Virus record (IMG/VR): IMGVR_UViG_3300035145_003993
Span: 147,365-211,364 of that record
DNA: 64,000 nt
Direction: 5' to 3' (one strand)
In this document: piece by piece, positions 2,165 to 42,527 of the stretch
How the letters are laid out: the number at the start of each line of letters is the position of its first letter
Numbering within the stretch: position 1 is the first letter of the stretch
Translations under genes and position numbers: made by a program
Notes under the pieces: model-generated
Databases searched by the model: none
What the model saw: the letters and a program-made list of their open reading frames with translations, nothing else
What the model was told of the DNA's origin: nothing

Positions 2165-2173
2165 TATTGTTGT

Positions 2174-2392
2174 TTATCCTTTCAACAAAGTCTTTTGTGT
2201 GTTTTCTGACAAAGACTCGTTTTTTGTCATTGTTGCGATTGAAGATGCACTAAGCATCCTTTTTTCATTAGTCAATACATCCTTGGCAAAATATAAATCA
2301 CCTGATTGGATTGCAACCTCATTTTCACTAATGATATTTTTATTTCTTAATTCTAACAAAATACTATTTGATAATACACTTTCAGTCGTCAT
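2174..2392 (-). CDS. hypothetical protein, 72 aa
   Basis: ORF tightly packed between exonuclease and groEL; no GroES-like motif seen. Confidence 0.65.
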   Translation of the reverse strand: MTTESVLSNSILLELRNKNIISENEVAIQSGDLYFAKDVLTNEKRMLSASSIATMTKNESLSENTQKTLLKG

Positions 2393-3203: not shown

Positions 3204-3669
3204 TATTGATTTCTTCTTTTTCTTTACCATTAATAATACTAGTATTTAAAATATTTGTATTGTCAATAATATTTGCTGTTTGACCATTATCTAAATTAAT
3301 CTTTATTTGATTATTTTTTATAATACTATTATTTGTCTCATTTTTACACTTTAAAGAATCTCTATTTAATTTTTCTTCCACTATATTAAAGAATTCTTCT
3401 TCGAGATTAATTGCACTTTCAATCATTTTACTAATAGAAGATTTTGCTCTTTCTAAAATAAATTCATTAACTTCATCTAAATCTTCAAAAGTATTATCTA
3501 ACTTATCTATACTAATTTTTTTACCTTTTTTATTAGGTAATAAAACTTTATAATTAGTTACTTCACCTTCTAGATCTTTTATGACAATTTGCTCTACTAT
3601 CTTTACAGGTATAATAGCTTGCTTGTCTTTTAAAATAGTATATAAAATTTGCCCTACTTCATATGACAT
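3184..3669 (-). CDS. hypothetical protein, 161 aa
   Basis: ORF on main coding strand, overlaps the next gene. Confidence 0.7.
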   Translation of the reverse strand: MSYEVGQILYTILKDKQAIIPVKIVEQIVIKDLEGEVTNYKVLLPNKKGKKISIDKLDNTFEDLDEVNEFILERAKSSISKMIESAINLEEEFFNIVEEKLNRDSLKCKNETNNSIIKNNQIKINLDNGQTANIIDNTNILNTSIINGKEKEEINNESTTS

Positions 3670-3671
3670 TT

Positions 3672-3998
3672 TTATTTCTCTTTTATGTTTTTATTTATTT
3701 TATCATTTATTTTATTTCCAAGTTTTGATGCTTTATTTAAAGGCATTAATCCTAATGCCTCCCTAACTTGGTCGTATAATTCTTCGCTTAATTTGCTTTT
3801 TAATTGCATCATATTTGCGTATGAATGTAAAACTATTTCTCTTTCAACATCATCTTCTTCAATTTTTCTAGATTCATACATAAACAAAACAGAAGGCATG
3901 TTTTCTTCATTATTTAAATTAACAAAAGGAAGTCCTCCAGTTATTGTTTCCTCACCTTTACTAAAATCTTCATAACATATTTCTGGCTGTCTTTTCAT
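3672..3998 (-). CDS. hypothetical protein, 108 aa
   Basis: ORF with AAGGA RBS. Confidence 0.7.
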   Translation of the reverse strand: MKRQPEICYEDFSKGEETITGGLPFVNLNNEENMPSVLFMYESRKIEEDDVEREIVLHSYANMMQLKSKLSEELYDQVREALGLMPLNKASKLGNKINDKINKNIKEK

Positions 3999-4047
3999 AC
4001 AATATCCTTTTTTTGTCTATTATATGAAATATAATGTCTTATTAAAA

Positions 4048-6471
4048 TTATAATTTCATTTTTTTAATTTTATCATCTATTGTATTTTTGACCTGGACTC
4101 TTTTGATACTGTCTTTTAAATAATTATCTTTTATAACACTGTTATTTTTAAAAACATATTCATTAAAATCTTGAAGCATTTTTTTCGTTTCAGAAAATGA
4201 CGAATTATTAATTTCTTTTAATTTTTTCCCGTATTCTGATTTTTGAAAATCTTTTGGATCATAATCTATATCAAATAAATTTGTGTCTGATAGATATTTT
4301 AATCCGTCGATTTTTTCTAAATCTTCATATCTTTTATCAAGTTCGTCATTTAAATTATTATATTTTTGTTCTGTCATTTTTTTATTATCATCATATAATT
4401 TAAGAACATTTTGATATTCTTTTGAAAATAAAGACTGAAAGTATTCAATCACTTTAATATACGTTTCAGCAATTTCTTTTTGAATAAAACCTTCAATATT
4501 AGATATTTCATCGTCGTCAGTACTTAAAATTTCGTTAATAAAGTCTTCGTTATTTTCTAATTCATTTATTTTCATAAAATTTGTATTTAACCAATTAAAT
4601 ATAGCAATATATTTTTCTTGATAACTCATTTCAAAAAATTTAAGACTAAAAATAATTCTATCAGTAATTATCTTCTCTAATTCTTGAAGATAATTGCTAT
4701 TCTCTATTGAGTCTTTAAAAGTTTTATATGAACTTTCATTTTTAAAGTCTTCAAAATTGTGATCAATATTTTTTTTAAATAAATTTTTATCTTTACTCTT
4801 AATTTTAATATCATCTAATAATAAATTATAATATTGTTTTATATACGAATCAGAATCTTCTTGTATACTTTTTTTAATATTACTAATTTCTTCTTGTTTT
4901 AATTTATCGTCAGAATTTTTTAAATCGTCTATTTTTTCTTCGAAATTTTTTAATTCTTTTTTATATATATCTTTTTCGTCAATAAATATTTGATCAGTTA
5001 GATAGTCATTTATGTAACCTTTGAGATCATTATCTTTGATGTAATTTAAAAAACCTCCAATGTTATCTTGAATTTTATTTTGAATTAGTTCATTAAAAGT
5101 TTTATCTTGAATTTTATTTACTTTTTTAAAATCTGTATTAGAAACAAGGCTTTTGTCTACACCATAATCAAGATTATATTCATTAACAGCTTTTACTAAA
5201 AGTAAGTCAATTATAATGCAAGAAGCAAGTCTATATTGATCTTTATAATATTTATTTATTTTATCTAAATCTTCATCAGATTTTTCTATTTCAAAAGTTT
5301 TATTATTTAAATCTTTTTTTTCTGATTCAGAACTGTTTTCAATCTTATCTCCTAGATCATTAAATTTTTTATTAGTTTTTTCGTTTTTATTAACTTGTTT
5401 TAAAGATTCTGTTTTAAAGTCAAATTTCCCATCATTGATAATCTTTTGAATTTCTTCATTTTCTAAAAGAACTGCTACAGCTATAGAATTGGATAATTCT
5501 AGAATTAAAGAAGCAAATTTATCAATTTCAAAATCATTACCAATATTTTCTTTTAATATAATATTTTTATTATTAATTTGCAAAACTTTTTTTAATCTAT
5601 ATGAAGACTCGTTCTTTTTTGTGTCAACTAAAGAAGTTTTTTTTATCGATTTTAAATAACTTTTAAGTTTCTCTAAGAATTTTTTTGATGTTTTGTTTTT
5701 TATAATGTTATAAGAAGTATAAGTTCGATTTTCTAATACTTTTTTTATTAAATTGAAAGTTTCTTTGTCTTTTTTCTTAAGAACCTCGTTGTTCATAATA
5801 TCAAAAAATTCTGGGTGAGCTTTTTTACTTAAAAATAAATTTAATTTAGGTTTAAGTTTATTAACTTTTTGTATGTTTTTTCTTAAAAGTTGATCAATAA
5901 TAGTTTTTGTAGGTGATTCTATTTTATTATCTTCATTAGATATAAGTTCAATTTCATAAATCATCCAAAAGATTATAAGTTGATACATATCATGGTCAAT
6001 ATTATTGTATTTTGCATATAAATTTTTATTATACAATTTCCCAGTTAAAAGATCAGATAAATTAATTTTGTCAAATATTGTTACACCTGGAACACTTAAA
6101 GCAAAAGTAGATAATTCTGAATTTGATATTCCTGCTTTGTTTAACATAGACTTTGTTGTATTGTCTATATTAGATATTGTTCTATCACTTGAATCAACAA
6201 AACTTACTCTTGCGTCTTTTAATGCTCTTTTAAAATCTTCATCTGACATGTTTTTTAATATTTTTGCTCTAAAGGTAAGCCATCCAGATTTTATTGTGAA
6301 TTTTGCTAATTGTGATAAAAACTTAGAACTATCACCCATAAATGAACTAACATCTCCAACAACGTCGGTTGTTATACCTTTTAATAATTCCTTATCAGAG
6401 CTGTCTTCTAAAATAATTTTTTTATTAAAAATCTTTAATACTTTATTTTTCATAGTGTTTATCTTCTTCAT
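4048..6471 (-). CDS. large K/N/D/E-rich hypothetical protein, about 800 aa (possible virion-internal protein)
   Basis: Long ORF, helical/low-complexity composition; alternative start at 6453. Confidence 0.7.
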   Translation of the reverse strand: MKKINTMKNKVLKIFNKKIILEDSSDKELLKGITTDVVGDVSSFMGDSSKFLSQLAKFTIKSGWLTFRAKILKNMSDEDFKRALKDARVSFVDSSDRTISNIDNTTKSMLNKAGISNSELSTFALSVPGVTIFDKINLSDLLTGKLYNKNLYAKYNNIDHDMYQLIIFWMIYEIELISNEDNKIESPTKTIIDQLLRKNIQKVNKLKPKLNLFLSKKAHPEFFDIMNNEVLKKKDKETFNLIKKVLENRTYTSYNIIKNKTSKKFLEKLKSYLKSIKKTSLVDTKKNESSYRLKKVLQINNKNIILKENIGNDFEIDKFASLILELSNSIAVAVLLENEEIQKIINDGKFDFKTESLKQVNKNEKTNKKFNDLGDKIENSSESEKKDLNNKTFEIEKSDEDLDKINKYYKDQYRLASCIIIDLLLVKAVNEYNLDYGVDKSLVSNTDFKKVNKIQDKTFNELIQNKIQDNIGGFLNYIKDNDLKGYINDYLTDQIFIDEKDIYKKELKNFEEKIDDLKNSDDKLKQEEISNIKKSIQEDSDSYIKQYYNLLLDDIKIKSKDKNLFKKNIDHNFEDFKNESSYKTFKDSIENSNYLQELEKIITDRIIFSLKFFEMSYQEKYIAIFNWLNTNFMKINELENNEDFINEILSTDDDEISNIEGFIQKEIAETYIKVIEYFQSLFSKEYQNVLKLYDDNKKMTEQKYNNLNDELDKRYEDLEKIDGLKYLSDTNLFDIDYDPKDFQKSEYGKKLKEINNSSFSETKKMLQDFNEYVFKNNSVIKDNYLKDSIKRVQVKNTIDDKIKKMKL

Positions 6472-6715
6472 ATAATTTTAAACTAATACCATAATTATCA
6501 GAACAGTAATTAATTAAGCTTATTTCGAAGTCATTTAATGTATGTTTATACGATTGACTATTCCTAGTAGAAAAATATTTTCTAATTTTAGGTTGCGAAT
6601 ATCTCATAATATATTTTTTAACAATTAACCAATTGTCTTCTTTATATATATCTAATAACTCTTCAAGAAGTTCTATAATTGTTTCCTTATGGTTTTGATC
6701 TATAGTGTTAAACAT
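6443..6715 (-). CDS. hypothetical protein, 90 aa
   Basis: ORF coupled to upstream gene by TAATG overlap at 6715. Confidence 0.7.
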   Translation of the reverse strand: MFNTIDQNHKETIIELLEELLDIYKEDNWLIVKKYIMRYSQPKIRKYFSTRNSQSYKHTLNDFEISLINYCSDNYGISLKLYEEDKHYEK

Positions 6716-7674
6716 TAAAATACTCCAAAATAATTTAGTTCAATACAATTATTATTTGATAAATCATCTATTTGTTTATTACTTTGAGTTATTTTAAAGT
6801 CTTGTAATAAAATATTTTTTTCTAAACCAGGTTCATAAATTAAAATCGACTCTAGATTAGTAAGACTTTTTAAATAAGAAACGAACTCTTTATATAGTAG
6901 ATATTGTATTAAACTTTTACAATCATTTTTTTTATTTAAATGACTTTGATTAAGAATAATATCTTTGCAGTAATTTGAAGAAATTTTATATTCATATTTA
7001 ACGTTTAAATAATCATACAATTTAAAATCAAACTTTTCTTCATTAGTATTAAAACTATATGATTTATTCATAATGATTGATTTAAAATCATTAAAACAAC
7101 TTAAATAAGATTTTAATTGATAACTTTCTGGGATTTTTATAAAAGAATTATTTAAACAATCATAAATATTAGATTTTGTTTCGTAAGAATTGTCAATTAA
7201 AATAGACCTATTATTTTTATTTGTAAAAGTTCCTTCTCTATTTTTATAATGACAAAAATTATAAATTCCTTCTAAATAAATTATATCTAAGTTAGAATCC
7301 CATAATATCGGAATAAATTTGGTTTCATTTTTTTTTATATTGATTTGTTGCCAATAATTTTTATTTTTTGATTTATTAAACAATTCTAATATTATAGAAA
7401 TAATTCTGTAGATGTTCGAATTAGTTTTGTAAAAGTTATTGATATTTTCGAGACTAATTCCTTTTATATCTCTTAGTTTTTGTGTTCTAAAGTCTATAAC
7501 AAATTCAGATCTTTCTTTAGACCATCTTACTGGAAATAACATGTTTGATGTAAATTCATAGCACTTCTTTTTTGAAATGATTCTTAATAAGTTTTTGTAA
7601 AAAACTAAACTTTTATTAATTGTATTAATTTGATTTAAATGATATGGTTTTGTAACATTAATAATTTCAAACAT
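6715..7674 (-). CDS. hypothetical protein, 319 aa
   Basis: Long ORF; no motif recognised. Confidence 0.7.
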   Translation of the reverse strand: MFEIINVTKPYHLNQINTINKSLVFYKNLLRIISKKKCYEFTSNMLFPVRWSKERSEFVIDFRTQKLRDIKGISLENINNFYKTNSNIYRIISIILELFNKSKNKNYWQQINIKKNETKFIPILWDSNLDIIYLEGIYNFCHYKNREGTFTNKNNRSILIDNSYETKSNIYDCLNNSFIKIPESYQLKSYLSCFNDFKSIIMNKSYSFNTNEEKFDFKLYDYLNVKYEYKISSNYCKDIILNQSHLNKKNDCKSLIQYLLYKEFVSYLKSLTNLESILIYEPGLEKNILLQDFKITQSNKQIDDLSNNNCIELNYFGVF

Positions 7675-7680
7675 CTACAA

Positions 7681-8388
7681 TTAAGAATTAATTTTTTTTA
7701 AAAATTCAATTATTTCTTTTTTCTCTTGGATAGACTCTTCGACTTCTGTATCGACATTACCTACCTTTATTACTGAAATTGGTGATGCCAATTTTTCTTC
7801 TGCTTTCTCTTTTGGCATATCTTGTAAATCTTCTAATTGATCTTTTCTACTTTGTGATCTTTTTAATTCACTTTTTGTTGCTTCTGATTTTCCAATAATA
7901 ATTTTTAAATCTTTAGGGCTATAAGCTGCTTTTCCGTTTACGTCAAGTAAAGTTATTTGTACGAGACCTTTTAAGAATACGTGTAAAGCCTTTTTTTCGT
8001 CACCTGTAAGCTTGTTAAAATATTTTTCTAAATCTTCATGAACACTTTTCTTAGAAAGAGAATGCGACGCTCTAAACTGATTTAGAATACTTTTAAGTTT
8101 ATCAAAATTATCAGCATCTGCTAAGTTAATAGTAGAAGGAGATTCATCTGGAGTATCATCAATCATTTCTTCTTTATCGTCAACTCTTTCTTCTTTATTA
8201 TCATCTCCTATTTCAGATGAGTCATTAGATTCTTCTTCATCTTCTTTGAGATTTTTTTCTAAATCTTGATGATAAGTTCCTCTACTTCTAGAGTCAGCAA
8301 TAAATTCATTTTGATTTTCTTTAACTTTTTCCCAAGAGTTTTCTTCTTTTAATATTTCTTCAAGTTTGTTTAAAATATCAAAATTCAT
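7681..8388 (-). CDS. acidic hypothetical protein, 235 aa
   Basis: ORF with GGAGG RBS; N-terminal ILxE-type leader. Confidence 0.75.
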   Translation of the reverse strand: MNFDILNKLEEILKEENSWEKVKENQNEFIADSRSRGTYHQDLEKNLKEDEEESNDSSEIGDDNKEERVDDKEEMIDDTPDESPSTINLADADNFDKLKSILNQFRASHSLSKKSVHEDLEKYFNKLTGDEKKALHVFLKGLVQITLLDVNGKAAYSPKDLKIIIGKSEATKSELKRSQSRKDQLEDLQDMPKEKAEEKLASPISVIKVGNVDTEVEESIQEKKEIIEFLKKINS

Positions 8389-8558
8389 TATTTATCCTCC
8401 CAGACAATTCTGTTTTGCCATCTTTCATTATACTGAGCATTTCGAAGTCTTCTTCTTTCGTCTTCTTCTCTAATATGATTTTCAATTTGACGTCTTTGTT
8501 GATTATCAATTTGTCTTTTATCTAGATCTTTTATAAACTTATCAAATTCAAATTCCAT
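8388..8558 (-). CDS. small hypothetical protein, 56 aa (missed by ORF track)
   Basis: AAGGA RBS, ATG at 8558, MEFEFDKFIKDLDKRQIDNQQRRQIENHIREEDERRRLRNAQYNERWQNRIVWEDK, stop overlaps next start (TAATG at 8386-8390). Confidence 0.7.
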   Translation of the reverse strand: MEFEFDKFIKDLDKRQIDNQQRRQIENHIREEDERRRLRNAQYNERWQNRIVWEDK

Positions 8559-8572
8559 TGTTATTTCCTTAT

Positions 8573-9275: not shown

Positions 9276-12200
9276 TTACTTTGTCTTTTTTCTAGACTTT
9301 CTAGTTTTAGGCAACTTAATAGTTTCTAAACCAAACTCAGAATCTAAATAATCTGCAAAGTCTTTTCCAATTAATAAACTTCCATATAATTCTTTGTAAT
9401 TTTCAAGAGCTTCCTTTGAATCTTTACCAATTTTATCAAATACTTTTGGAATTAATACATCGAAATCTGTTCTATTTTTAAATTCTGATGATGCAAATGC
9501 TTTAATAATTGATTCATCAATATCACTATCAGACATAGAATAAATGTGATTTATTAATTCATCTGCTGTTGTTTTAGTTAATATTTTTAGATCTTCATAT
9601 ACTGATCCAATGATTCCATTTGGACTAAACATATCATCTAATAATTTTTCAACGTCTTTTCTATTAAATTCGCCACCAAAAAAACTTTTAAGCTGATCAT
9701 CTTCATCCCTATTAGAATTTAATTTTTCTACTTTACCTATAAGATATCCTTTTCCTGGATTTAAAAAATAATCTCTTTGACTATCTCTTGTACTTTTTGC
9801 AGATGATTTTGATATCCCTTTAGATCCGGAAGATCCTAGTCCCGATAGTTTTTGAACTACATTAGCAATTGAAACAAAAATATTTTGTCCTTCATCTTTT
9901 TTGATTTGCTCAATTCTTGGACTAGATGGACTTAATCCTGGTGCAAGAATATCTTTTCCATAATGAGTATCAAAATATTCTTTAGTTGCTTTAATAATAC
10001 TATTTTTTGTTCTTCCTTGGATTTTTTTCTTATAGAAATTATCAAGTAAACCTATAACATATAAAGAAAAACCTGATTGATTTCCAAGAGAAGCTTCAAG
10101 AACTAAGTAAGAAGAAAAACCTTTATCATTTTTCGATAAATCCTTTAGTAATTCATTATAACTAGCTTCATCATCATCTGATAGTATTTTAATAGAATTT
10201 ATTTTTTCTGAAATTTCTTGTGCGACAGAATCATCTCTAGCTTCATCAAAATATCTTTGGAGTAATTTAGTATCTGTTAATATTTTACTAATTTCTGAAA
10301 AGTAATCTGAAACGTCTTCTAGTTTCTTTGATCTTTTGTATTTTCCTTGTAATTCTAATTGTTTTAATTGTGAAGAAGAAATAGCCACATCTGCTTCGTC
10401 TTCGTTTTTAGAAGGAACTCTTACGAATGATTTATCATCAATCAAATCAAGCTTAACCAAACGTTCAGTCCATCTATCTGCTGCTGCAGAATATATTCGA
10501 GCTTTTTCATCTGGATTACATGAATAAAACAACTCTTGAGACCAAGCCTTTTGAGCTAATTGTCTAACACCTGCTCCACTTGCAAACTGGCCATAGGACA
10601 TATGAGAAATATCAACGTCAGTAAGGTTTTCTTTTTTATCAAGACCAAACTTAGAAACATGTTCTTGTGTCTTTTTAATTACATCATCTATAGATGCATA
10701 ATTGTCATATAAGTCTCTATAGAACTTTCTTTTTTTATCTACATTAATAATATTAATTTTATCTTTGTATGATAGTCTTTCTAGAATTTCTTTAATTTCA
10801 TTTTCTTCTTCTTCACTCAAATCTTCAGCAGGAATAGTGTCTGGTATATTAATAATATTACCAAATTCATCTTCTTCGATTGGATTAAAAATATCTGGAT
10901 TAACTCTTTCTGTAGATTTCTTATATAAATCATTTAAACGTTTAATATCATCAGAAATTTGTTTCATATATTTCTGAAGTTCGAAAACAGTTAATGATAA
11001 ATTTCTATTTTTACTAGAATAATCTTCTAATTCTTTTGTAACATTAATTTCTTCTTCAATATAAAAATTGTCATCTTGATCAGGATCATCAGATATTCTT
11101 TTATCAAATTCAATATTTTGCTGTTTAAGCTTTTCTAATTCATCGTCAGATAATCTAGGTTCTAAATCAAAATCAGCAGTATATTCTTGATTTAAAGGGT
11201 ACATAATATCTAATTCTTGTTTGAGTTCTTGAATACTTTTATTTCTAGAAGAACCAGATCTAGACCATAGTCTTAATAGTACTTGTTCTCTAATTAAATC
11301 ACTTTCTAAGTCAAAGTCGCCTCTAGATAATTCTTCTTTAACATCTACAATAATTGATCTTATTTCTTCACTAGACAAACTTTTTCCAAGACCGACACTT
11401 CTTCTAAAACTCGAAACAGCGTTTTTAAGATTTAATTTTTGCGCTTTGTCTAGGGAAGAAATCATTCTGTCTTTTTCTGAATCACTAATTCCTAACATCA
11501 TATTAGACTGAGATTCGAGTGTTAAATAAACTTCTATTGACATTATTATCCAAAGTTTTCTTTTTGCTAATAGAGATAAATCATTTTCTTGACTAACACC
11601 CGAATTTTTGAGCTTATTTGAAACATAAACAACTAATTGATCCCAAGGTTGTAATACAGCAGACTTTTGACCGGCAACATATTTACCTGTTCCCGTAAAA
11701 CCTAAAGCTTTTGCTATTTTGTTATTTGAAGGACCTTTTGAAAATCTTTTTTGTTCTTTAGATTTAACTTTTTTATAAATAGATTCAACAGGTTGTGATA
11801 AACTAGGTGCTGGTTTTAAATCACTATCAGGCAAATCATCTAAATCTATTTCTGAAAAGTCTTCTTCGTCTTTTTTCTGTTGAACGCTATCTAAATCTTC
11901 AGATCCAAATTCATCGTCTAATTGTTGTTGAATCATTTCTAGTTCTTCTTGAGAAGGACCCTCAATATTATCTAAACTTCTTCTTCTTCTTCTTGAAGTT
12001 CTTGATTCTAATAAATCAATTTTATCTTCTATTGATTTAATTAATATATTCTCTAGTTTTAAATCTAATTCTTTGTTAACATAGTTAACTTTATCTAATT
12101 CTTCGTTAATTAAAGAGTCAAAGTCTCTAATACTTTTTGAATATTTTAAATCAATAGATTCTTTTATTTCTTTAATAAAATCATTCGTGATATTATTTTT

Positions 12201-12410
12201 CAAAAATTCAAAAATATATTTTTCATTTGGAAGATCTCCATTAGTTAAATTTAAAGATCTAACTAAACATTTGAATTCTTCAAAAAGAACTTTATTTTTA
12301 TTTAAATCACTCTCGCTTAATCTTGAAAGAGCATAAAACTTTCTTTGATAATCTTTGTTTTTAAAAGAAAGAAGTTTATTAACTCTATATTTTAGTTTGT
12401 TATTCGTCAT
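9276..12410 (-). CDS. large hypothetical protein, 1044 aa, with acidic linkers
   Basis: Long ORF; possible HTH-like segment (LTDVDISHMSYGQFASGAGVRQLAQKAW). Confidence 0.75.
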   Translation of the reverse strand: MTNNKLKYRVNKLLSFKNKDYQRKFYALSRLSESDLNKNKVLFEEFKCLVRSLNLTNGDLPNEKYIFEFLKNNITNDFIKEIKESIDLKYSKSIRDFDSLINEELDKVNYVNKELDLKLENILIKSIEDKIDLLESRTSRRRRRSLDNIEGPSQEELEMIQQQLDDEFGSEDLDSVQQKKDEEDFSEIDLDDLPDSDLKPAPSLSQPVESIYKKVKSKEQKRFSKGPSNNKIAKALGFTGTGKYVAGQKSAVLQPWDQLVVYVSNKLKNSGVSQENDLSLLAKRKLWIIMSIEVYLTLESQSNMMLGISDSEKDRMISSLDKAQKLNLKNAVSSFRRSVGLGKSLSSEEIRSIIVDVKEELSRGDFDLESDLIREQVLLRLWSRSGSSRNKSIQELKQELDIMYPLNQEYTADFDLEPRLSDDELEKLKQQNIEFDKRISDDPDQDDNFYIEEEINVTKELEDYSSKNRNLSLTVFELQKYMKQISDDIKRLNDLYKKSTERVNPDIFNPIEEDEFGNIINIPDTIPAEDLSEEEENEIKEILERLSYKDKINIINVDKKRKFYRDLYDNYASIDDVIKKTQEHVSKFGLDKKENLTDVDISHMSYGQFASGAGVRQLAQKAWSQELFYSCNPDEKARIYSAAADRWTERLVKLDLIDDKSFVRVPSKNEDEADVAISSSQLKQLELQGKYKRSKKLEDVSDYFSEISKILTDTKLLQRYFDEARDDSVAQEISEKINSIKILSDDDEASYNELLKDLSKNDKGFSSYLVLEASLGNQSGFSLYVIGLLDNFYKKKIQGRTKNSIIKATKEYFDTHYGKDILAPGLSPSSPRIEQIKKDEGQNIFVSIANVVQKLSGLGSSGSKGISKSSAKSTRDSQRDYFLNPGKGYLIGKVEKLNSNRDEDDQLKSFFGGEFNRKDVEKLLDDMFSPNGIIGSVYEDLKILTKTTADELINHIYSMSDSDIDESIIKAFASSEFKNRTDFDVLIPKVFDKIGKDSKEALENYKELYGSLLIGKDFADYLDSEFGLETIKLPKTRKSRKKTK

Positions 12411-19791: not shown

Positions 19792-20001
19792 ATGTACCAA
19801 ATTTTAGAAAATTATATACAACTTGTATTTGAAAACGAAAAAAATAAAAACAAAACGTTTAAAGATATACTTAATAGTTTAAAAAATAGTCAAAATCCTA
19901 AAAAGGTACTAAGAAATACAGATCCTATAGAAAGAAATACAGATCAAATAGGATTTGACCAATTAATTAAAAAATCTAGTAATTCTAATCAAACGCGTTA
20001 A
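19792..20001 (+). pseudogene. short plus-strand ORF (69 aa), probable gene remnant with leader motif
   Basis: AAGGA RBS, MYQILENYIQLVFE leader, internal 14-bp direct repeat aagaaatacagatc (19911 and 19932), 3' end overlaps the dnaE-C stop. Confidence 0.4.
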
Positions 20002-23000
20002 TCTTTTTAAGCTTAGCTAAACTTGATGACATACCCCAGTTAACATCATTACTAATATCAGCCAACCAAGTTGTAAATTCAATTTCACCTTCCATATCTC
20101 CCCATACTCGAAGCCATCCACTTCGATTATCAATATCGACGCATTTCCATCTCATAAATGATTTACCGTTTTTAGTTGTTTTTCTAATAACTTCTGTAAC
20201 AGTAAACCATCCAATTCCACGCTCACCTTTTGGTATATCAAAAATACTATTGATTTGCTTCTGTTTTAGTTTTTTAACTAAGCTTGGTGGAAACAATAAA
20301 TCGTCATTTGCATCATTACTGAGTTCAAAATAGTTTTTAATTTTAGTACTTCTTGACCAATCACTAACAACTCTGTATTGTGAGATTAACTTTTCGACAA
20401 TTGGAATGATTTCTTCACCATTTTTATTTGCTTTTTTAATAGCAGTTTTTGTCATTCCAAAGCTTCCTTTCTTTAAAATCATATAATTATCCAAGATTAA
20501 ATCATGCATTTGTTTGTGATTGTCTAGTGTTCCATCTTGAAATTCTTGGAGTGACTTAAATGCTTCCATCTTTGTTAGTGATGAAAAAGCTGTTTTATTC
20601 ATTTTTGAATGTTTCCATTCTCCTTCTTTATTGTAAAAAAGATCTTGTAAATTATTATATGGTCTATTTACAAATATTTCTTCAACAGCTTTGTCACCTA
20701 CTCCTTTAAGAGATGTCAACGGAGGAACAAACGATTTTAAATCTTCTGAATATTCCCATTGAGATCCTGAGTGATTTATATCAATTGCTGATATGTCATA
20801 TCCTAGTGCCTTAATTTCTGCAATTACTTTGGACATTCCTTTAGGATTACCATTTTCTGATTGTAAAACAGTTGCTAGCCAGTCTGTTTCGTAGTGTGTA
20901 TGAAGCCACGCAGCGTAATATGAGTCGATTGCATAAGAAACAGCATGACTTTTATTGAAACCGTAAACAGCAAAACCTTCTATTTCTTCCCAAAGTTTTT
21001 TAGATATATGTTCGGGTACATCATTAATTTCTTTTGCACCTTTAATAAACTTTTCTCTTGCAATTGTTTTTTCATCTTTTTTATTTCCCATTGTTGCGAG
21101 ATTATTCTTAACAAGGGTTTTTCTCAGCTTATCAGCTTCACCTGGATCAAAACCTGATAGTTTTTGTGCAAGTAACATAAATTGCTCTTGAAATACAACG
21201 TAAGAAAATGTTGGTCCTAAAACTTCTTCGATAATCGGATGATCGTATTTAATTTGTTCTGCGTTTTGTTTAGATTTAACATATTTTTTATGAACATTAG
21301 CTTTAAGAGGTCCAGGACGATAAATAGCAGTTAAAGCTGCTAATTCTTCAATACTTTCTGGTTTAGCTTCTAATGAAAAGTTTCTAGCTCCTGTATTTGT
21401 AAATTGGAATATTCCTACAAATCTTCCATCATGATATACATGCTTCCAGACATCTTGATCATTTTGTTCGTGAAATCTACAATTTAAATGTTTATCAAAG
21501 AATTTTTTAGCATCACTAAATTGTGGATTATTATTACCCTCCTTTTTAAGGATTCTATAAATACAATTTTCAATATCTTTTAATAAGGATAAACCTAAGA
21601 AATCAAATTTAATAAAACCATTATCTTCTAAGTTTCTAAAATTTAATCCTTCTGACCATGGTGTTTGTAATTCTCCTCTTACACCTACGATAGGCATAGT
21701 TGTTTCTAAATGTTCAGGATCAGCTACTAACACACCCCCTGCATGACGACCAATTGCTCTATTCTGCATAAACAAAGAAGCAATATGAGTTTCAACTTCA
21801 GGATATCTTTCCATAAAATCTTTATATTCTGGAGAATACTTTTTACAATCTTCATGCTTAAGAACAAAAACAGATTTTTCTTGATCGTCACCTTTTGCCA
21901 TTTTCATAACTTGATCGTGAAGAGGACCAGTTACTTTATTTACTTCATCATACGGAATATCATAAAACTTAGATATATCTTTAATAAGAGACTTAAGCTT
22001 TAAAGTATTAAAGTTAGAAACAGGAATAACAGCATCGTTTCCATATAATTCTTTTGCAGCATTAATTAACTCATCACGATCACCAGCATCTGTATCAATA
22101 TCAGGCCATGAAACCCTATGCCTTCCTAAGAATCTTGCCCAAAGAAGATCGTATGGAAGAGGGTCAACTTGTGTAATGCCTAATAAATAATTAACTAAAG
22201 AGCCAGCTCCTGATCCTCTTCCTGGCCCTAATAAAGTTTTCTTTTCAGCCTTCTTAAAAATTTCATACATCGTAATAAAATATGCTTCGTGACCAAGATA
22301 CTTTATATCTGATAATTCTTCTTTAGCACGATCAACATAAACTTGGTTTGTATGAAAACCATGGCTAACGAGTGAATCTTTAACTAAAGAAGATAAGTGT
22401 TGAAAAGGAGTTTTATTTGGAACGTTTATTGTAGGTAGTTTAACTCCTGTATCAATCCAAGTATCTTCAAATTCATTCCAAACGATATCATGAGTTCGAT
22501 TAATAGCATCACGAACTAATTCTTCATTACCTTTATAAAATTCATAAGTAGGATATGAATCAAGAAATTCTTCCCACATTTGAGAAGCATTTTTTGGATA
22601 TAATTCACACTTAAGATCTTCAAATTCTGGAAGAGAAAGATTATCTCTTTTTCCTAACCAACCAAGTTTTTTATATAATTCTCGAGCTTGCCATTTTTCA
22701 TTTGAAGGGTAATGTGAATCTGCTGTACAAATAAGAGGAATACCTGTTAATTTATGGTGTTCTATAAGATAATCATTAACAGTATGCTGTTTTTCTAATT
22801 TATTAAACTGTAATTCAAGTTTAAAATTGTTTTCTCCAACACAAGAAACAAACCTATCTGTTAGATTTAATAATTCTTTCTGAATTTGTTCACGTGATTG
22901 ATTATGAACTTCACCTCTTAAAATACGATTACTATAAATACCACCAAGGCAGTTGTGCACTAAAATATTGTTAGCAAAAAAATTGTGATTACCTTCAACA

Positions 23001-23080
23001 GTAATGTCGTAAACGTCAGAAGTCTCATCTATTTCTTCAATAATTTCAACTTCAATAAATTTTGTTTGAATGTCTTTCAA
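19985..23080 (-). CDS. dnaE: DNA polymerase III alpha, C-terminal part (IntC 43 aa + 988 aa C-extein)
   Basis: TTG start with AGGA RBS; LVHN|CLGG junction; ADSHY, GRGSGAGSL, PDIDTD, GRHAGG, KFDFLGL, FNKSHA motifs; C-terminal OB-like region. Confidence 0.96.
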   Translation of the reverse strand: MKDIQTKFIEVEIIEEIDETSDVYDITVEGNHNFFANNILVHNCLGGIYSNRILRGEVHNQSREQIQKELLNLTDRFVSCVGENNFKLELQFNKLEKQHTVNDYLIEHHKLTGIPLICTADSHYPSNEKWQARELYKKLGWLGKRDNLSLPEFEDLKCELYPKNASQMWEEFLDSYPTYEFYKGNEELVRDAINRTHDIVWNEFEDTWIDTGVKLPTINVPNKTPFQHLSSLVKDSLVSHGFHTNQVYVDRAKEELSDIKYLGHEAYFITMYEIFKKAEKKTLLGPGRGSGAGSLVNYLLGITQVDPLPYDLLWARFLGRHRVSWPDIDTDAGDRDELINAAKELYGNDAVIPVSNFNTLKLKSLIKDISKFYDIPYDEVNKVTGPLHDQVMKMAKGDDQEKSVFVLKHEDCKKYSPEYKDFMERYPEVETHIASLFMQNRAIGRHAGGVLVADPEHLETTMPIVGVRGELQTPWSEGLNFRNLEDNGFIKFDFLGLSLLKDIENCIYRILKKEGNNNPQFSDAKKFFDKHLNCRFHEQNDQDVWKHVYHDGRFVGIFQFTNTGARNFSLEAKPESIEELAALTAIYRPGPLKANVHKKYVKSKQNAEQIKYDHPIIEEVLGPTFSYVVFQEQFMLLAQKLSGFDPGEADKLRKTLVKNNLATMGNKKDEKTIAREKFIKGAKEINDVPEHISKKLWEEIEGFAVYGFNKSHAVSYAIDSYYAAWLHTHYETDWLATVLQSENGNPKGMSKVIAEIKALGYDISAIDINHSGSQWEYSEDLKSFVPPLTSLKGVGDKAVEEIFVNRPYNNLQDLFYNKEGEWKHSKMNKTAFSSLTKMEAFKSLQEFQDGTLDNHKQMHDLILDNYMILKKGSFGMTKTAIKKANKNGEEIIPIVEKLISQYRVVSDWSRSTKIKNYFELSNDANDDLLFPPSLVKKLKQKQINSIFDIPKGERGIGWFTVTEVIRKTTKNGKSFMRWKCVDIDNRSGWLRVWGDMEGEIEFTTWLADISNDVNWGMSSSLAKLKKINAFD
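22952..23080 (-). mobile_element. Split intein C-fragment (DnaE), 43 aa
   Basis: Blocks F/G: VYDITVEGNHNFFANNILVHN, followed by Cys+1 at 22949-22951. Confidence 0.95.
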
Positions 23081-23099
23081 AATTATTCCTTTTTATTAG

Positions 23100-23128
23100 A
23101 ATATAATACAATTAGTTAATATTTACAC
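23100..23128 (-). promoter_or_regulatory. Promoter GTGTAA-N17-TATATT upstream of dnaE-C
   Basis: -35 box lies in the last codons of the endonuclease gene; -10 box is 19 nt before the TTG start. Confidence 0.6.
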
Positions 23129-24062
23129 TTTCATTAATTAAATCAATTGTATTATCAATTTCATTTTCCCATATAATCAAGTAGTTATAGTTTCTTTTTT
23201 TTGCTATCTTCATTTTGTAAGAATCAGCATTCCAAATATCACCTGCTTTTATTTTTCCTCTTGGGAAATCAAGAATGCTATTTTCATTATATAGAGAAGG
23301 GTGTGCGTGCCAAAATAGACCATGGCATTCAATGATTAAATTAAACTTTGGCAGATAAAAATCATATATGTAACATCTTTTGTTGTATAATAATTCATCT
23401 TTTGTCAAATTAATTCGATATTGAATAGAATAGTCAATGTTATTTTCTCTTAATAATCTTTCAATTCTTTTTTCTGTTTTAGGTTGTGATGTTTTTTTAA
23501 GAGCACCAATTGCACCTTTAACAGCTCTTTCTGAAATTATTGCATTTGCATTATCCTTACTTAATCCTTTCTTAAGCCAAAACTCAATGCAAAATGGAGA
23601 ATTTGATCGTTTATAGTTAGATAAACTTTCTTTTGCATCTTCAATATTTTCCGTTTTTTCTATCCAATACTCTAAAGTTTGTTTTTGGTTGTAAGGTTTA
23701 CCTGACTTTTTTCTAGTTTTAACTGTTCCTTTTTGTCCTTTTAAAGAAGTCTTCAAATAGTAACTTTCAATTTCTTTTATTGAAGTGTTTTTTGGAAATT
23801 TAAACTGACTTCTGAATGCTGTTGAAGTTTTTTGATTATCTACATGAAGCTTAAAACCGATTTTGTCTTTTAAAAGAATAGAAAAAGTTTGCTGTGATAT
23901 ATTTAACTCATTAAAGCATTTTCTATTGTCACGATTAATCATTTGATATAACATTGAAAACGAGTAAAGTTTATTAATAAAACCTTGTATTTCTTCTTTT
24001 GAGTAATAAGAAAAAAGTATTTCTTCTCTAATTTTCCATATATTTGTTTTTTTTGTTTTCAT
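23112..24062 (-). CDS. free-standing homing endonuclease, Vsr-like/DUF559 (EDxHD-type), inside the fractured dnaE
   Basis: SQPKTE...YIYDFYL...IIECHGLFWH...ADSYK...LIIWENE; position between IntN and IntC; AGGAGG RBS. Confidence 0.85.
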   Translation of the reverse strand: MKTKKTNIWKIREEILFSYYSKEEIQGFINKLYSFSMLYQMINRDNRKCFNELNISQQTFSILLKDKIGFKLHVDNQKTSTAFRSQFKFPKNTSIKEIESYYLKTSLKGQKGTVKTRKKSGKPYNQKQTLEYWIEKTENIEDAKESLSNYKRSNSPFCIEFWLKKGLSKDNANAIISERAVKGAIGALKKTSQPKTEKRIERLLRENNIDYSIQYRINLTKDELLYNKRCYIYDFYLPKFNLIIECHGLFWHAHPSLYNENSILDFPRGKIKAGDIWNADSYKMKIAKKRNYNYLIIWENEIDNTIDLINESVNIN

Positions 24063-24099
24063 TATATTATCCTCCTAGGCACATATTATATATTCTGCT

Positions 24100-25017
24100 T
24101 CAGAGGTTAATATTAATAATTATATCACCTTTAACAATATCTTTTGTATCAATCCATCCTTTGTCTTTAACAAGAACACGATGATCAGGTGTAAGTTTGA
24201 TTTCGTTACCTTCTTTGTCTTTAATTCTCATAAGCTTAGCACCTCCTCGGGTTTTGTCACCCCAGATTACTTTTTTAAATTCAGCTTTGCTAGTATATTC
24301 ATTATAAGAAAGAACTTGGATTTCTTCACCTTTATTAAATCTTTCTACAACTTCTTTAATAGATAGATTTCCAGATGAAGTTTGTAAAGTTGTGTCAGGA
24401 TGAAGACAAGCTGTAGATATGTGTAATCCTTCACCATGTTCTTGAAGCATTTGAAAATCAATACGTGGGTATCTATAAAAACCATATTTATACGATTTTT
24501 TAACTAAAGTAAATAAATTGTGAAGACCTTTTTGGTTTTTTGCTGTAACTACCAAATGATATCTTCTTTTCCACTCATCTTTAAGGATATCAACATTTTT
24601 TGTTTCATCTTCGTCTTCAACAACTAATCCGCCACTTTCATCATCTGCGTCAATATCAACTTTTTCTTTTGATTTCCTTTCAGCAGCAGCGGCAGATTTT
24701 GCGTCTTTTACTGCTTGTTTGTGAGCAGCATATTCTTCAGACCATTGTTGAAGTGAAGGAACAAAATAAAATTCAACTCCATAAATTTGTCTATAATTCC
24801 TTCCTGATTTTTGCATTCTAATTGTATGAGATCTTGCATGAGCAAGACCATTACCGTTACCATGGTCTGTTAGTGCCCATGCATCCATACCCTGAGATTC
24901 AGACAAAACAAAATCAATATGATCAGATGGGTATCCTAATCCATCGAATGTTGAAAACGTGCTGTGTGCATGAAGACCGACAAATCTATCTGGTGGTGTT
25001 ATTAAATCAATAGACAA
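24100..25017 (-). CDS. dnaE: DNA polymerase III alpha, N-terminal PHP part (203 aa N-extein + IntN 102 aa)
   Basis: LHAHSTFSTFDG, ALTDHGN, YGVEFY, HLVVTAKNQKG, YRYPRID PHP motifs; ISTA|CLHPDT junction; TTG start. Confidence 0.96.
   Translation of the reverse strand: MSIDLITPPDRFVGLHAHSTFSTFDGLGYPSDHIDFVLSESQGMDAWALTDHGNGNGLAHARSHTIRMQKSGRNYRQIYGVEFYFVPSLQQWSEEYAAHKQAVKDAKSAAAAERKSKEKVDIDADDESGGLVVEDEDETKNVDILKDEWKRRYHLVVTAKNQKGLHNLFTLVKKSYKYGFYRYPRIDFQMLQEHGEGLHISTACLHPDTTLQTSSGNLSIKEVVERFNKGEEIQVLSYNEYTSKAEFKKVIWGDKTRGGAKLMRIKDKEGNEIKLTPDHRVLVKDKGWIDTKDIVKGDIIININL
24103..24408 (-). mobile_element. Split intein N-fragment (DnaE), 102 aa
   Basis: Cys1 block A CLHPDT, block B TPDH, then a stop codon. 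Confidence 0.95.
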
Positions 25018-39501: not shown

Positions 39502-40563
39502 TTATCCTTGACAGCTTAAACATTCATCAGGATCAGCGAAATCTTGTAACTTATCTTGCTTAACCTTCTGACTAACCTTTTCAGCTGAAGCTCCTGCGTT
39601 TGTCCTTAGATAATATAATCCTTTTAACTTCTTTTTCCAAGCTCTAATATGTACTGCATTAACATAAGATTTATCAGTACCAGCGGGAAAGAATAAATTA
39701 ACACTTTGACCTTGGCAAATAAATTCTTGTCTATCACCTGCGTGATCTATAATCCATCTTTGATCTAATTCAAATGCTGTTTTAAATACTTCTTTATGCC
39801 AATCTGACATGTATTCAAGGTGTTGAACAGATCCTTCTGCTAAGATAATAGATTTCCATTGTTCATTCATCCAAGATTCAATATCAATTTTTTCTACATT
39901 GTCAGCATACTCTCTTAAAACTTTTTCTAAGTGATGATTTTTCACTAAATAAGAACCTACTCTTGTTCTATGTGTATATGCATTACTTTTCCAAGGTTCA
40001 ATAGATGGTGAAGTCCCTGCAATAATAGAAGAATTAGCATTTGGAGCAATTGCTAATAGATGAGAATTCCTAACTCCGTAACCAGATCCATCAGGACATT
40101 CACCTTTTTTAATCGCCAACTCTTTTGTACGCTGTTTTGCTTTTTCTTTAATTAATGAGAATATATTAATATTTGTTGCTTTTGCAATCCCTGATTCAAA
40201 CGGAATATTTTTTGATTGAAGATAGGAGTGAAATCCCATTGCACCTAAACCAAGTGATCTTTCTCTCATAGCGGAAAATTTTGCTTTGTGCAAATAGTCA
40301 GGAGCATTTTCAATAAAAAATTGTAGGACGTTATCTAAATACTCTATTAAATCTTCAACAATATTTGTGTCTTTCCATTCATCAAACTTTTCAACATTTA
40401 GTGAGCTTAAACAACATACTGCACTTCTTTCAGGAGATGTTGCCAAATGGATCTCATTACAATTGTGAACGAGCATGTTATTTGCAAAAAAATTTTTATT
40501 GTCTTTAACAGTTATGTCAAAAACAGGTTCTTTTGTTTCTCTTTTAATTATTTTTAATCCCAT
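39502..40563 (-). CDS. nrdA: ribonucleotide reductase alpha, C-terminal part (IntC 34 aa + 319 aa)
   Basis: LVHN|CNEI junction, CCLSSLN, RSLGLGAMG, AIAPNANSS, QGQSVN, LYYLR, C-terminal CLSC. Confidence 0.96.
   Translation of the reverse strand: MGLKIIKRETKEPVFDITVKDNKNFFANNMLVHNCNEIHLATSPERSAVCCLSSLNVEKFDEWKDTNIVEDLIEYLDNVLQFFIENAPDYLHKAKFSAMRERSLGLGAMGFHSYLQSKNIPFESGIAKATNINIFSLIKEKAKQRTKELAIKKGECPDGSGYGVRNSHLLAIAPNANSSIIAGTSPSIEPWKSNAYTHRTRVGSYLVKNHHLEKVLREYADNVEKIDIESWMNEQWKSIILAEGSVQHLEYMSDWHKEVFKTAFELDQRWIIDHAGDRQEFICQGQSVNLFFPAGTDKSYVNAVHIRAWKKKLKGLYYLRTNAGASAEKVSQKVKQDKLQDFADPDECLSCQG
40462..40563 (-). mobile_element. Split intein C-fragment (NrdA), 34 aa
   Basis: VFDITVKDNKNFFANNMLVHN, followed by Cys+1 at 40459-40461. 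Confidence 0.95.
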
Positions 40564-41302
40564 ATTTTCTACCTTTTATCCATTCTTCACTGTTAAGTGC
40601 ATCGATTTCTTTTTTGCTCATTTGTTTTGAAACTTTAAGTTTTTCGTTAGTGTACCAATTTTTTCCTGATAATGACTTAGAAAGTTTATTATTATGGCTA
40701 TTCGTTCTTTTATATTTAAAATCACTGTCATTTAAGTTATACAAATCTTTCATTGCGTTTACAAAACCTTTTAAGCCCGATCCATATTTTTTAAATCTAA
40801 ATTTTGAATAAGACTTTGGAAAACCATAAACTTCTGAACTATATATTTGCCACTTTCTTTTAGGTAGCTGTCCTTCTTTTTGAAAATAAGTAAAAGCTGA
40901 TTTTAATATTTCTTCATCAGTAAAACCTGTGTATGTTGGATTTTTTTCTCCTGATGTTGCAATAGAATTTTTTAGTCGCCATTCACTATATTTTTCATCA
41001 GGAACTATCCATCCACCATCACCACCCGTAGTCATATTATAACCCTTTTTAAAAGTATCATAATATTCAATGTAATACTTTTCTTTTTCTAAAGCTTCTT
41101 TTTTAGTATAACATTCAAAAATTATTTTAGATACTATATTTTTAGGACCGTATTTTCTAATTGCTTTATAAAAATGTGTATCATGACCTGATTGTGCATT
41201 TGTAATATGTTTGTGTAGTCTTTTTGACAAAGTTAGTCCAGTGTATCCAATGTATGACTTGTTTGTTTGTTTAAAAGTGTGCATGTATATTATATATTTC
41301 AA
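40544..41302 (-). CDS. free-standing GIY-YIG homing endonuclease inside the fractured nrdA
   Basis: YIIY...SYIGYT, RLHKH, FYKAIRKYG, E..YI...GYNMT.GG; TTG start with AAGGAG RBS; 20-nt overlap with the nrdA-C start. Confidence 0.9.
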   Translation of the reverse strand: MKYIIYMHTFKQTNKSYIGYTGLTLSKRLHKHITNAQSGHDTHFYKAIRKYGPKNIVSKIIFECYTKKEALEKEKYYIEYYDTFKKGYNMTTGGDGGWIVPDEKYSEWRLKNSIATSGEKNPTYTGFTDEEILKSAFTYFQKEGQLPKRKWQIYSSEVYGFPKSYSKFRFKKYGSGLKGFVNAMKDLYNLNDSDFKYKRTNSHNNKLSKSLSGKNWYTNEKLKVSKQMSKKEIDALNSEEWIKGRKYGIKNN

Positions 41303-41360
41303 ACTATCTCCTTATGTTAGTAAATGAATTTCAACATTAAATATACATCTAACAATCAAA

Positions 41361-42527
41361 TTAAGAAAAAACTAATTCATCGTCTTCTTTAAGATCTTTA
41401 GCTTTTACATATCCTCTATTTACAGTATATACTTTGTGATCAGGAGTACAAACAATTTTTTTACCAGTTTCTTCATCTATTATTTCAAGTACTTCTGCAC
41501 TTTTACTAATTAATCCTGCATCAGTAATTTCTTTGTATTCAATTTCTTTTGTATCAATATTATAAGACAACACAAAAATTTCTTTTCCTTCATGAAAAAG
41601 ATCAACAACTTCTTCTAATGATACCTGTGCATTTGGCACATTGTCAATTAACACATCAATCTTCGTATCTCCTGTTAAGCAAAGATTTGATCCATGTATC
41701 TTAAGTCCTAAATCTTTTTGATATTGAGGTAAGTGTTTATTTGCTTCTGAAATGAAGTTAATATATGGCTCGCCTGTTCTAAATCTGACTTTTAGTATTC
41801 TTTGCCATAATTCTCTTGCGTCAACTGTGTCTCTTATTGTTTTATCATTAGGATCAATTAAATTCCATTTTTCGCCTTTAGATACTGCTTCCATAAATTC
41901 GTCTGTTACATTTACTGCATTGTTTAAATTAAAACATTTACGATTTACGTCTCCTCCTGTTGGAAGTCGAATACTTAAAAATTCAATAATATCAGGATGA
42001 GAAACATCCATATAAGCTGCATAGCTTCCTTTCCTAGTTTTTCCTTGTCTATAAGCAGTCATATCACTATCTGCAGATTTTAAAAAAGGAATTGGTCCTG
42101 GTGATATTGAAGAATTAGATCTAACTTTAGACCAATGACCTCCTACACCACCACCTTTTACAGACATCCAACGTAATTCATTTGAATGATCTATAAGACC
42201 TTCTAAAGAGTCATCAACATAACTTAAAAAACAAGAAATAGGAAGTCCTAATTCTGTACCACCGGGAACGGGAGCATTAGATAAGATTGGAGAACTAAAC
42301 ATAAACCAACCTTTTGCCGCGTAATTATAAATTCTTTGTGCAAGTGACAAATCATATTTTTTATTTTGAAAATCGTAAGAGAATGCTACAGCTGCCCTTG
42401 CAAAACTTTCTTGAGGAGACTCCTCGTGATCTTGCATATAATAGTCTCTAAGTAATTTTCGTGAAAAATTTGTTAATTTATCGTCATAATCTAAGTTAAT
42501 ACTAATACCATAGCATTCTTTTTTCAT
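41361..42527 (-). CDS. nrdA: ribonucleotide reductase alpha, N-terminal part (282 aa + IntN 106 aa)
   Basis: FSSPILSN, PISCFL, GGGVG, QGKTRKGS, TGEPYI, HGSNL|CLTGDT junction. Confidence 0.96.
   Translation of the reverse strand: MKKECYGISINLDYDDKLTNFSRKLLRDYYMQDHEESPQESFARAAVAFSYDFQNKKYDLSLAQRIYNYAAKGWFMFSSPILSNAPVPGGTELGLPISCFLSYVDDSLEGLIDHSNELRWMSVKGGGVGGHWSKVRSNSSISPGPIPFLKSADSDMTAYRQGKTRKGSYAAYMDVSHPDIIEFLSIRLPTGGDVNRKCFNLNNAVNVTDEFMEAVSKGEKWNLIDPNDKTIRDTVDARELWQRILKVRFRTGEPYINFISEANKHLPQYQKDLGLKIHGSNLCLTGDTKIDVLIDNVPNAQVSLEEVVDLFHEGKEIFVLSYNIDTKEIEYKEITDAGLISKSAEVLEIIDEETGKKIVCTPDHKVYTVNRGYVKAKDLKEDDELVFS
41364..41681 (-). mobile_element. Split intein N-fragment (NrdA), 106 aa
   Basis: Cys1 CLTGDT, block B CTPDH, RGYV.A.DL...D.L, then a stop codon. 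Confidence 0.95.

Follow-up and report, generated by a model that had tools for sequence, protein, structure and literature searches.

Fractured genes, in which a conserved gene is cut in frame by a split intein and a same-strand endonuclease open reading frame (ORF) lies between its two halves, were described by Dassa, London, Stoddard & Pietrokovski (2009; PMC2677866), who reported three fractured DnaE loci (DnaE-1, DnaE-2, and DnaE-3) at non-cyanobacterial sites from ocean metagenomes. In their DnaE-2 locus, the endonuclease is Vsr-like with its nuclease domain modelled at residues 196-315, and in 15 of the 16 fractured loci hairpins, which were related to translational repression, were present 5' of the endonuclease gene, many of them containing the T4/Aeh1 late-promoter motif TATAAATA (Dassa et al., 2009; PMC2677866). 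The present work concerns the dnaE gene in the final 64 kb (hereafter the window) of the 211,364-bp IMG/VR virus record IMGVR_UViG_3300035145_003993, which derives from an uncultured, marine-type phage and is ~84% complete. The arrangement of this gene is an already described kind of fractured gene, of which the window provides a further, complete example. The novelty that was implied in an earlier note on this DNA is not borne out, as the three loci mentioned above had already been reported at sites other than the cyanobacterial one.

Within the window, three consecutive ORFs of the ORF list, all on the minus strand, correspond to the N-terminal half of dnaE, an endonuclease gene and the C-terminal half of dnaE (Table 1), and the dnaE of this phage is thereby confirmed to be a fractured gene. 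The N-half matched in Pfam the PHP domain (E 9e-20) and the N-terminal part of Intein_splicing (E 2e-10, positions 3-93), while the C-half matched the C-terminal part of Intein_splicing (E 2e-9, positions 119-155) followed by the DNA_pol3_alpha, finger, and HHH_6 domains. The polymerase motifs, viz. PDIDTD and FDFLGL (the catalytic motifs of the palm), the fingers, an intact FNKSH and the HhH, are all located on the C-extein. The predicted spliced DnaE is comprised of 203 amino acids (aa) from the N-extein and 988 aa from the C-extein, and these lengths agree with the 1191-aa product given in the earlier note. Based upon the observations described below, we consider it highly probable that a selfish cassette of 1,457 bp, consisting of a class-1 split intein and the gene for an EDxHD-type endonuclease, has been inserted between Ala203 and Cys204 of this phage dnaE.

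The position of the insertion was examined in ~45 related contigs obtained from two IMG/VR scans, which contain 34 distinct alleles (35 including that of the window). Thirty of these 34 alleles lack the intein and are collinear over the junction, where they read ...S[TS]A/CLGG... (a slash marks the junction) and, at the nucleotide level, ...ACTGCA/TGTTTAGG... (e.g., around the site in contigs L027 or L033). In the other four (L005, L016, and the partial contigs L035 and L041), intein sequence is present directly after the Ala, which brings the number of occupied alleles in this comparison to five when the window's own copy is counted. Because the 30 intein-less alleles read continuously at this place, the insertion point between Ala203 and Cys204 is fixed. 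The cysteine at the junction is invariant across all alleles and it is therefore a native residue of DnaE rather than one borne by the intein.

Evidence that the cassette is mobile comes from its comparison with L028, the most similar occupied allele. The nucleotide identity between these two loci is 93% for the N-terminal half of the intein (IntN), 93% for the endonuclease gene, 100% for the second spacer and 98% for the C-terminal half of the intein (IntC), but only 77-80% for the dnaE exteins, with the identity changing abruptly at the C junction. The synonymous divergence (dS) is likewise 0.09-0.28 within the cassette versus 1.67 in the C-extein, which shows that the cassette, as judged from its sequence divergence, is much younger than the host dnaE gene. 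These comparisons indicate that the cassette has moved between diverged phages as a single unit. The ratio of nonsynonymous to synonymous divergence (dN/dS) is 0.05-0.13 for the intein and endonuclease (0.05-0.11 for the intein parts), values that show purifying selection on both of them, and the exteins are likewise under strong purifying selection. Contigs from a seawater DNA run (X3) and from a marine metatranscriptome (X12) join position 22945 of the window to 24403 and thus skip exactly 1,457 nt. The intein and the C-extein begin with two nearly identical codons, which explains the offset of 6 nt between this skip and the ends of the cassette. The empty-site contig from X3 is ~96% identical to the exteins of the window, and the cassette is likewise missing from L017/L033, the nearest relative in IMG/VR (94% protein identity); hence, the cassette was gained, or precisely lost, very recently. 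In L028 (IMGVR_UViG_3300020433_001472), a 9-nt insertion (TCCTAGGTA) was also observed at ~6030-6045, so that the N-extein has an in-frame TAG between its STFS and TFDG.

All of the residues required for class-1 splicing are present in the intein of the window, viz. Cys1, T73-x-x-H76 of block B, blocks F/G ending in His-Asn, and Cys+1. In 27 diverse homologues the same residues (Cys1, T-x-x-H of block B, the terminal HN, and Cys+1) are invariant, and the alignment of IntN with these homologues contains an invariant C1, T, W, T-x-D-H, and GW. The net charge of IntC is -8, whereas that of the C-terminal half of IntN is +3. Among solved structures, the one most closely related to IntN is that of the NrdJ-1 split intein (PDB 8UBS; E 6e-9), which itself comes from a fractured gene. 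On account of the conserved residues, this element is predicted to be a class-1 split intein with the HINT fold that is capable of trans-splicing. The split intein with canonical residues proposed in the earlier note is borne out by the above invariance together with the Pfam Intein_splicing matches.

The assignment of the middle ORF required more sensitive methods, as by Pfam alone its match to Vsr (E 0.008) was below the cut-off. While a word-index search retrieved only close relatives, an exhaustive search identified 3,216 representative clusters of relatives, 58 of which were aligned. In this alignment D234, G248, H252, D280, W298, and E299 show no variation, and E197 and E245 are almost invariant. 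Among the motif residues of this protein (E197, D234, H247, H252, and D280), E197, D234, H252, and D280 correspond to those of the EDxHD motif, i.e., E25, D51, H69, and D97 of Vsr. This motif was defined for I-Bth0305I, an enzyme that cuts next to its own insertion site (PMC3239194). Profile matches were obtained to both Vsr (E 0.004) and the catalytic domain of I-Bth0305I (3R3P; E 2e-4). An AlphaFold (AF2) model of the endonuclease has a predicted local distance difference test (pLDDT) score of 93.7, and its best Foldseek matches in the PDB are again Vsr and I-Bth0305I with a probability of 1.00, the template modelling (TM) scores normalised by target being 0.53 for 1cw0 and 0.66 for 3r3p. 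By its motif residues, profile matches, and predicted fold, the middle ORF is thus assigned to the EDxHD (Vsr-like) family of homing endonucleases, and the Vsr-like enzyme that had been placed between the two halves from the letters alone is sustained by evidence other than the weak Pfam match. This gene is the sole member of the EDxHD family in the phage genome.

Upstream of the endonuclease gene, the final codons of IntN and the stop (CCUCU) pair with the Shine-Dalgarno sequence AGGAGG of the endonuclease in a hairpin with a minimum free energy of -15.3 kcal/mol (z -3.98). An equivalent hairpin with compensatory changes is found in L028, L029, and the distant L067, i.e., in four loci including the window; in L067, CCGCC pairs with GGCGG. 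These changes show a conserved hairpin that is predicted to occlude the ribosome-binding site of the endonuclease gene. The T4/Aeh1 late-promoter motif TATAAATA is absent from the hairpin sequence of the window dnaE locus.

The manner in which the cassette is proposed to act and spread can be described in four steps. The three ORFs, which are separated by spacers of 37 and 31 nt with no convincing terminator predicted between them, would be co-transcribed; sigma-70-type promoter matches were not enriched (32 observed versus 34 expected from shuffled sequence). The basic C-terminal part of IntN would then associate with the acidic IntC. In the third step, an acyl shift at Cys1, trans-thioesterification by Cys204, cyclisation of the terminal Asn, and a final acyl shift would join Ala203 to Cys204, giving the full-length DnaE with a nine-ligand PHP site. 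Lastly, in mixed infections, the endonuclease would cut intein-less dnaE near the STA/CLGG codons and the repair would copy in the whole cassette; the transfer of the cassette and the empty site are indirect evidence for such cleavage. No assumption of a regulatory benefit to the phage is needed for such a cassette.

Several considerations weigh against this interpretation. The trans-splicing, the endonuclease cleavage and the PHP exonuclease activity are all predicted from conserved residues. The step in identity between the window and L028 is gradual at the N junction, with 8 and 7 mismatches per 60 nt on either side, and the copy in L028, in view of its in-frame TAG, may be defective or mis-assembled. 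Further, instead of the empty site, the endonuclease could target an allele that contains the intein, as the model of Dassa et al. has it. Additionally, both dnaE halves have TTG starts.

Table 1. Positions in the window of the fractured dnaE gene, its constituent parts and the second fractured gene (nrdA)
Feature	Position	Strand	Size and start	Characteristics
dnaE N-half ORF	24100-25017	minus	305 aa, TTG start	Reads ...HISTA/CLHPDTTL...NINL-stop
Middle ORF (endonuclease)	23112-24062	minus	316 aa	
dnaE C-half ORF	19985-23080	minus	1031 aa, TTG start	Reads MKDIQ...NILVHN/CLGGIYS...
dnaE N-extein	24409..25017	minus	203 codons, TTG start	PHP ligands H16, H18, D25, H52, E82, H154; C-terminal ...HISTA; intein-less alleles collinear up to here
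IntN	24100..24408	minus	102 codons + TGA stop	Cys1 at 24406-24408; block B T73-x-x-H76 within LTPDHRV
RNA hairpin	24059..24119	minus		
Homing endonuclease gene	23112..24062	minus	316 aa	Free-standing, EDxHD (Vsr-like) family; helical N-terminal region, nuclease domain ~195-313
IntC	22952..23080	minus	43 codons, TTG start	AAAGGA ahead of start; blocks F/G, end ...ILVHN
dnaE C-extein	19985..22951	minus	988 codons + stop	Cys+1 (spliced C204) at 22949-22951; PHP D281, H283 at 22712-22720
Whole mobile cassette	22952..24408	minus	1,457 nt	IntN, hairpin, endonuclease gene, IntC
nrdA N-half + IntN	41361-42527	minus		
nrdA-locus GIY-YIG endonuclease	40544-41302	minus		
IntC + nrdA C-half	39502-40563	minus		

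The residue that follows the intein is of interest because of its role in the PHP domain. In phmmer alignments, Cys+1 (C204) corresponds to C145 of the Taq Pol III alpha subunit and C158 of Mycobacterium tuberculosis DnaE1, the latter being the sole cysteine among the nine zinc ligands of that protein (Baños-Mateos et al., PMC5636811). The alignments to these two proteins reveal that all nine ligand positions are occupied in the window DnaE, viz. H16, H18, D25, H52, E82, H154, C204, D281, and H283, of which D281 and H283, located within CTADSHYP, align to Taq D212 and H214. Seven of the ligands are invariant in all 33 alleles compared and the HxH pair is present in 30 of the 33. The resulting pattern, HHDHEHCDH, conforms to the HHDHEH[C/H]DH that defines an "active" PHP domain (PMC12926913), and a PHP exonuclease activity of the window DnaE is predicted from this motif. 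No match to a DnaQ-type exonuclease (PF00929) was found in the 211-kb record, which is ~84% complete, and the host may have a DnaQ. As six of the ligands are on the N-half and three (C204, D281, and H283) on the C-half, the nine-ligand site becomes complete only after the two halves are joined. At spliced position 868, the FNKSH motif, which adjoins the intein site of cyanobacterial DnaE, is intact. That the insertion precedes a PHP metal-ligand cysteine and is not at the cyanobacterial site, that all nine ligands are present with Cys+1 among them, and that the site forms only upon splicing had all been put forward in the earlier note, and these points stand on the basis of the 30 empty alleles, the intact FNKSH, the Taq and M. 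tuberculosis alignments and the above division of the ligands. Splicing nucleophiles that are also catalytic residues are common, and the coincidence of the splicing nucleophile with a PHP zinc ligand, which adds one more intein at a catalytic residue, leaves the current view of DnaE or of inteins unchanged. A separate feature of this domain is the loop between E82 and H154 (24556-24771 in the window, N-half residues ~83-153), which is highly charged (AAAAERKSKEKVDIDADDESGGLVVEDEDETKN...); in the alignments it is ~72 residues long here, versus ~34 in M. tuberculosis DnaE1 and ~25 in Taq for the corresponding loop, which lies beside the PHP active site.

Among the alternatives to a purely selfish cassette, one is that trans-splicing, which takes place at the cysteine ligand of the PHP site, gates the assembly of that site and that the phage has co-opted the element to control timing or fidelity. 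If this were true, then early in infection, or whenever the halves are unbalanced, replication would proceed with a proofreading-deficient polymerase or not at all. We regard this possibility as very improbable. Equally improbable is that the intein halves serve as mere affinity domains, which hold the DnaE fragments together without any splicing. The complementary charges of IntN and IntC are in accordance with such an assembly, and a precedent for it has been reported for a fragmented phage NrdA (PMC3045599). However, all residues that splicing requires (Cys1, T-x-x-H of block B, the HN at the end of IntC, and Cys+1) are conserved in the 27 diverse homologues, the dN/dS of the intein parts is low, and the PHP metal site requires Cys204 to be properly placed beside Ala203.

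The earlier note had also suggested that the unspliced C-half could act as an error-prone polymerase, and in its extended form this idea implies that the C-half alone is deficient in proofreading until trans-splicing raises the fidelity of the replicase. The palm motifs, fingers and HhH present on the C-half, the 6 + 3 division of the ligands, and the lack of a DnaQ in the record are consistent with it. However, the C-half retains only the last part of the PHP domain, and the Pol III alpha subunit unfolds cooperatively, with point mutations in the PHP domain alone lowering both its stability and its activity (Barros et al., PMC3666897). Most relatives, including the ~96% identical one, are without the cassette and therefore the phage lineage does not depend upon such a switch. 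Moreover, the cassette behaves like a recently transferred selfish element, and in diverse phages the same site occurs both with and without an endonuclease gene. This suggestion is without support, and we consider it very improbable. The chances are just as slight that the interrupted dnaE is a decaying, non-functional gene in a phage using the host replicase or its small family-A polymerase-like ORF, for, notwithstanding that ORF and the TAG in one occupied allele (L028), the window's three ORFs are intact and retain every catalytic residue of the PHP domain, the polymerase, and the intein, strong purifying selection acts on the exteins as well as on the intein, and intact N-halves with a corresponding length are maintained in ~78 independent clusters; this reading and that of non-covalent assembly alone were both rejected.

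With regard to the distribution of this element, a search with the N-half identified 160 proteins, and the ~78 clusters (metagenomic) that share the S[TS]A/C junction show 41-89% overall identity to the query N-half. In three distant neighbourhoods the same split site was observed either with a gene for an endonuclease of ~317 aa or without any such gene. A contiguous mini-intein allele at the dnaE PHP site was not found, though the searches could not retrieve full-length precursors. When the locus was compared by megablast with 50,697 phage genomes, nothing was found, and in tblastn the matches to phage genomes were only ~30% identical for DnaE and ~35% for RecA; hence, this phage has no cultured relative. 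When 185,579 cellular genomes were scanned for the IntN family by means of a single block-B pattern, which is not exhaustive, no dnaE with this intein was detected and only distant inteins in other genes (e.g., nrdJ) were found.

The dnaE genes of related phages contain additional split inteins. In L016 (IMGVR_UViG_3300025078_000002, 1686-8572), dnaE is divided into four ORFs that are joined by three split inteins, located at the PHP-Cys site, at FLGRHR/C...HN/TSWPDIDTD, and at FMQNRS/C. Two of these three are accompanied by Vsr-like endonuclease genes, and the third has no gene between its halves. Further sites in this clade are YGFNK/S (three residues downstream of the cyanobacterial site), GPGRG/C...HN/SGAGS, and YGFF/C...SN/CFQEQ, where the intervening ORFs encode DUF559/ROS-MucR-like, endonuclease-I-like, or C2H2 zinc-finger nucleases; the carriers of the extra sites are L017, L019, L020, L022, L023, L026, L044, L046, and L060. 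The three sites in L016 and the three further ones give six split-intein sites in this dnaE family, and dnaE of the phage clade is a hot-spot with at least six such sites and up to three per gene. Several inteins must function together within the same cell, and this makes them interesting in practice for the ligation of proteins from multiple fragments. Additionally, in L008 (212-1224) and also in L011, L012, L022, L025, and L066, a 302-aa zinc-finger/PD-(D/E)xK-like ORF is located directly upstream of dnaE, with a duplicate of dnaE codons 1-21 ahead of it, and resembles a free-standing homing endonuclease gene inserted at the 5' end of dnaE.

The window also contains a second fractured gene, nrdA (39502-42527, minus strand; Table 1), in which the insertion is at SNL/CNEI, ahead of the thiyl-radical cysteine, and the ORFs of the endonuclease and the C-half share 20 nt. 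When the intein regions of the two genes were compared (22952-23080 and 24100-24408 versus 40462-40563 and 41361-41690), the IntN of dnaE was found to be 34% identical to that of nrdA from the same phage, and the last 21 residues of IntC were 76% identical. Judging from these similarities, the two split inteins of this phage are related. Other genes in the window encode a GroEL-type chaperonin (533-2164), a short family-A polymerase-like (PolA-like) protein (48674-49723), and an 844-aa SLT transglycosylase-domain protein (49772-52306). For five large ORFs (4048-6471, 9276-12410, 52315-55746, 56040-58805, and 59097-62063) there was no Pfam match, and four of them (4048-6471, 9276-12410, 52315-55746, and 59097-62063) also had no match in PHROGs.

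In comparison with known systems, the window intein shares with the cyanobacterial split DnaE inteins (Ssp/Npu) a Pol III alpha subunit as the host protein and a predicted class-1 trans-splicing with Cys1 and Cys+1. However, the Ssp/Npu inteins are found in cellular hosts at a site just before CFNKSH in the fingers and their halves are encoded at distant loci, whereas the window intein occurs in a phage, its site (203/204) is in the PHP domain and not before CFNKSH, and its halves are adjacent, being only 1 kb apart and separated by an endonuclease gene. As with the NrdJ-1/NrdA split inteins, its +1 Cys belongs to the catalytic residues of the host enzyme, but the host gene and the site are different. 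The spliced protein resembles the PHP-exonuclease DnaE of M. tuberculosis (DnaE1) and Thermus (PMC5636811) in its full nine-ligand set with a single cysteine, although its own exonuclease activity is putative. The endonuclease shares the E, D, H, D motif, a profile match, and the predicted fold with I-Bth0305I (PMC3239194; PDB 3R3P), to which it is ~21% identical over the nuclease domain, the part compared; in contrast to that enzyme, whose gene lies in a group I intron of phage recA, it is free-standing inside a dnaE split intein.

The literature searches retrieved no paper with these intein peptides and nothing specific on intein sites in the DnaE PHP domain. The closest resemblance is to the fractured genes of Dassa et al., with which the window locus has in common a conserved replication gene, a split intein, a same-strand, free-standing endonuclease gene whose start has a hairpin upstream of it, and a phage context, and the match to these genes claimed in the earlier note is well founded. 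The extent of the DnaE-2 nuclease domain (residues 196-315) matches the 316-aa length of the endonuclease found here, and therefore, as judged from the published description, the window locus may be of the same type as DnaE-2. A difference is that the 3' end of the endonuclease gene overlaps the downstream ORF by 6-69 bp in the published loci (15 loci; a frequent but not defining characteristic), whereas in the window dnaE locus a gap of 31 nt separates it from the IntC ORF. While the first descriptions rested on short metagenomic fragments, the window provides a complete and intact fractured replication gene within a long viral contig. Beyond the work of Dassa et al., it adds evidence for en-bloc transfer, a near-identical relative with an empty site, and the recognition that the +1 Cys is one of the PHP ligands; this population evidence indicates that the split intein and the endonuclease gene travel together as a unit, whose ends are at or near the boundaries of the intein.

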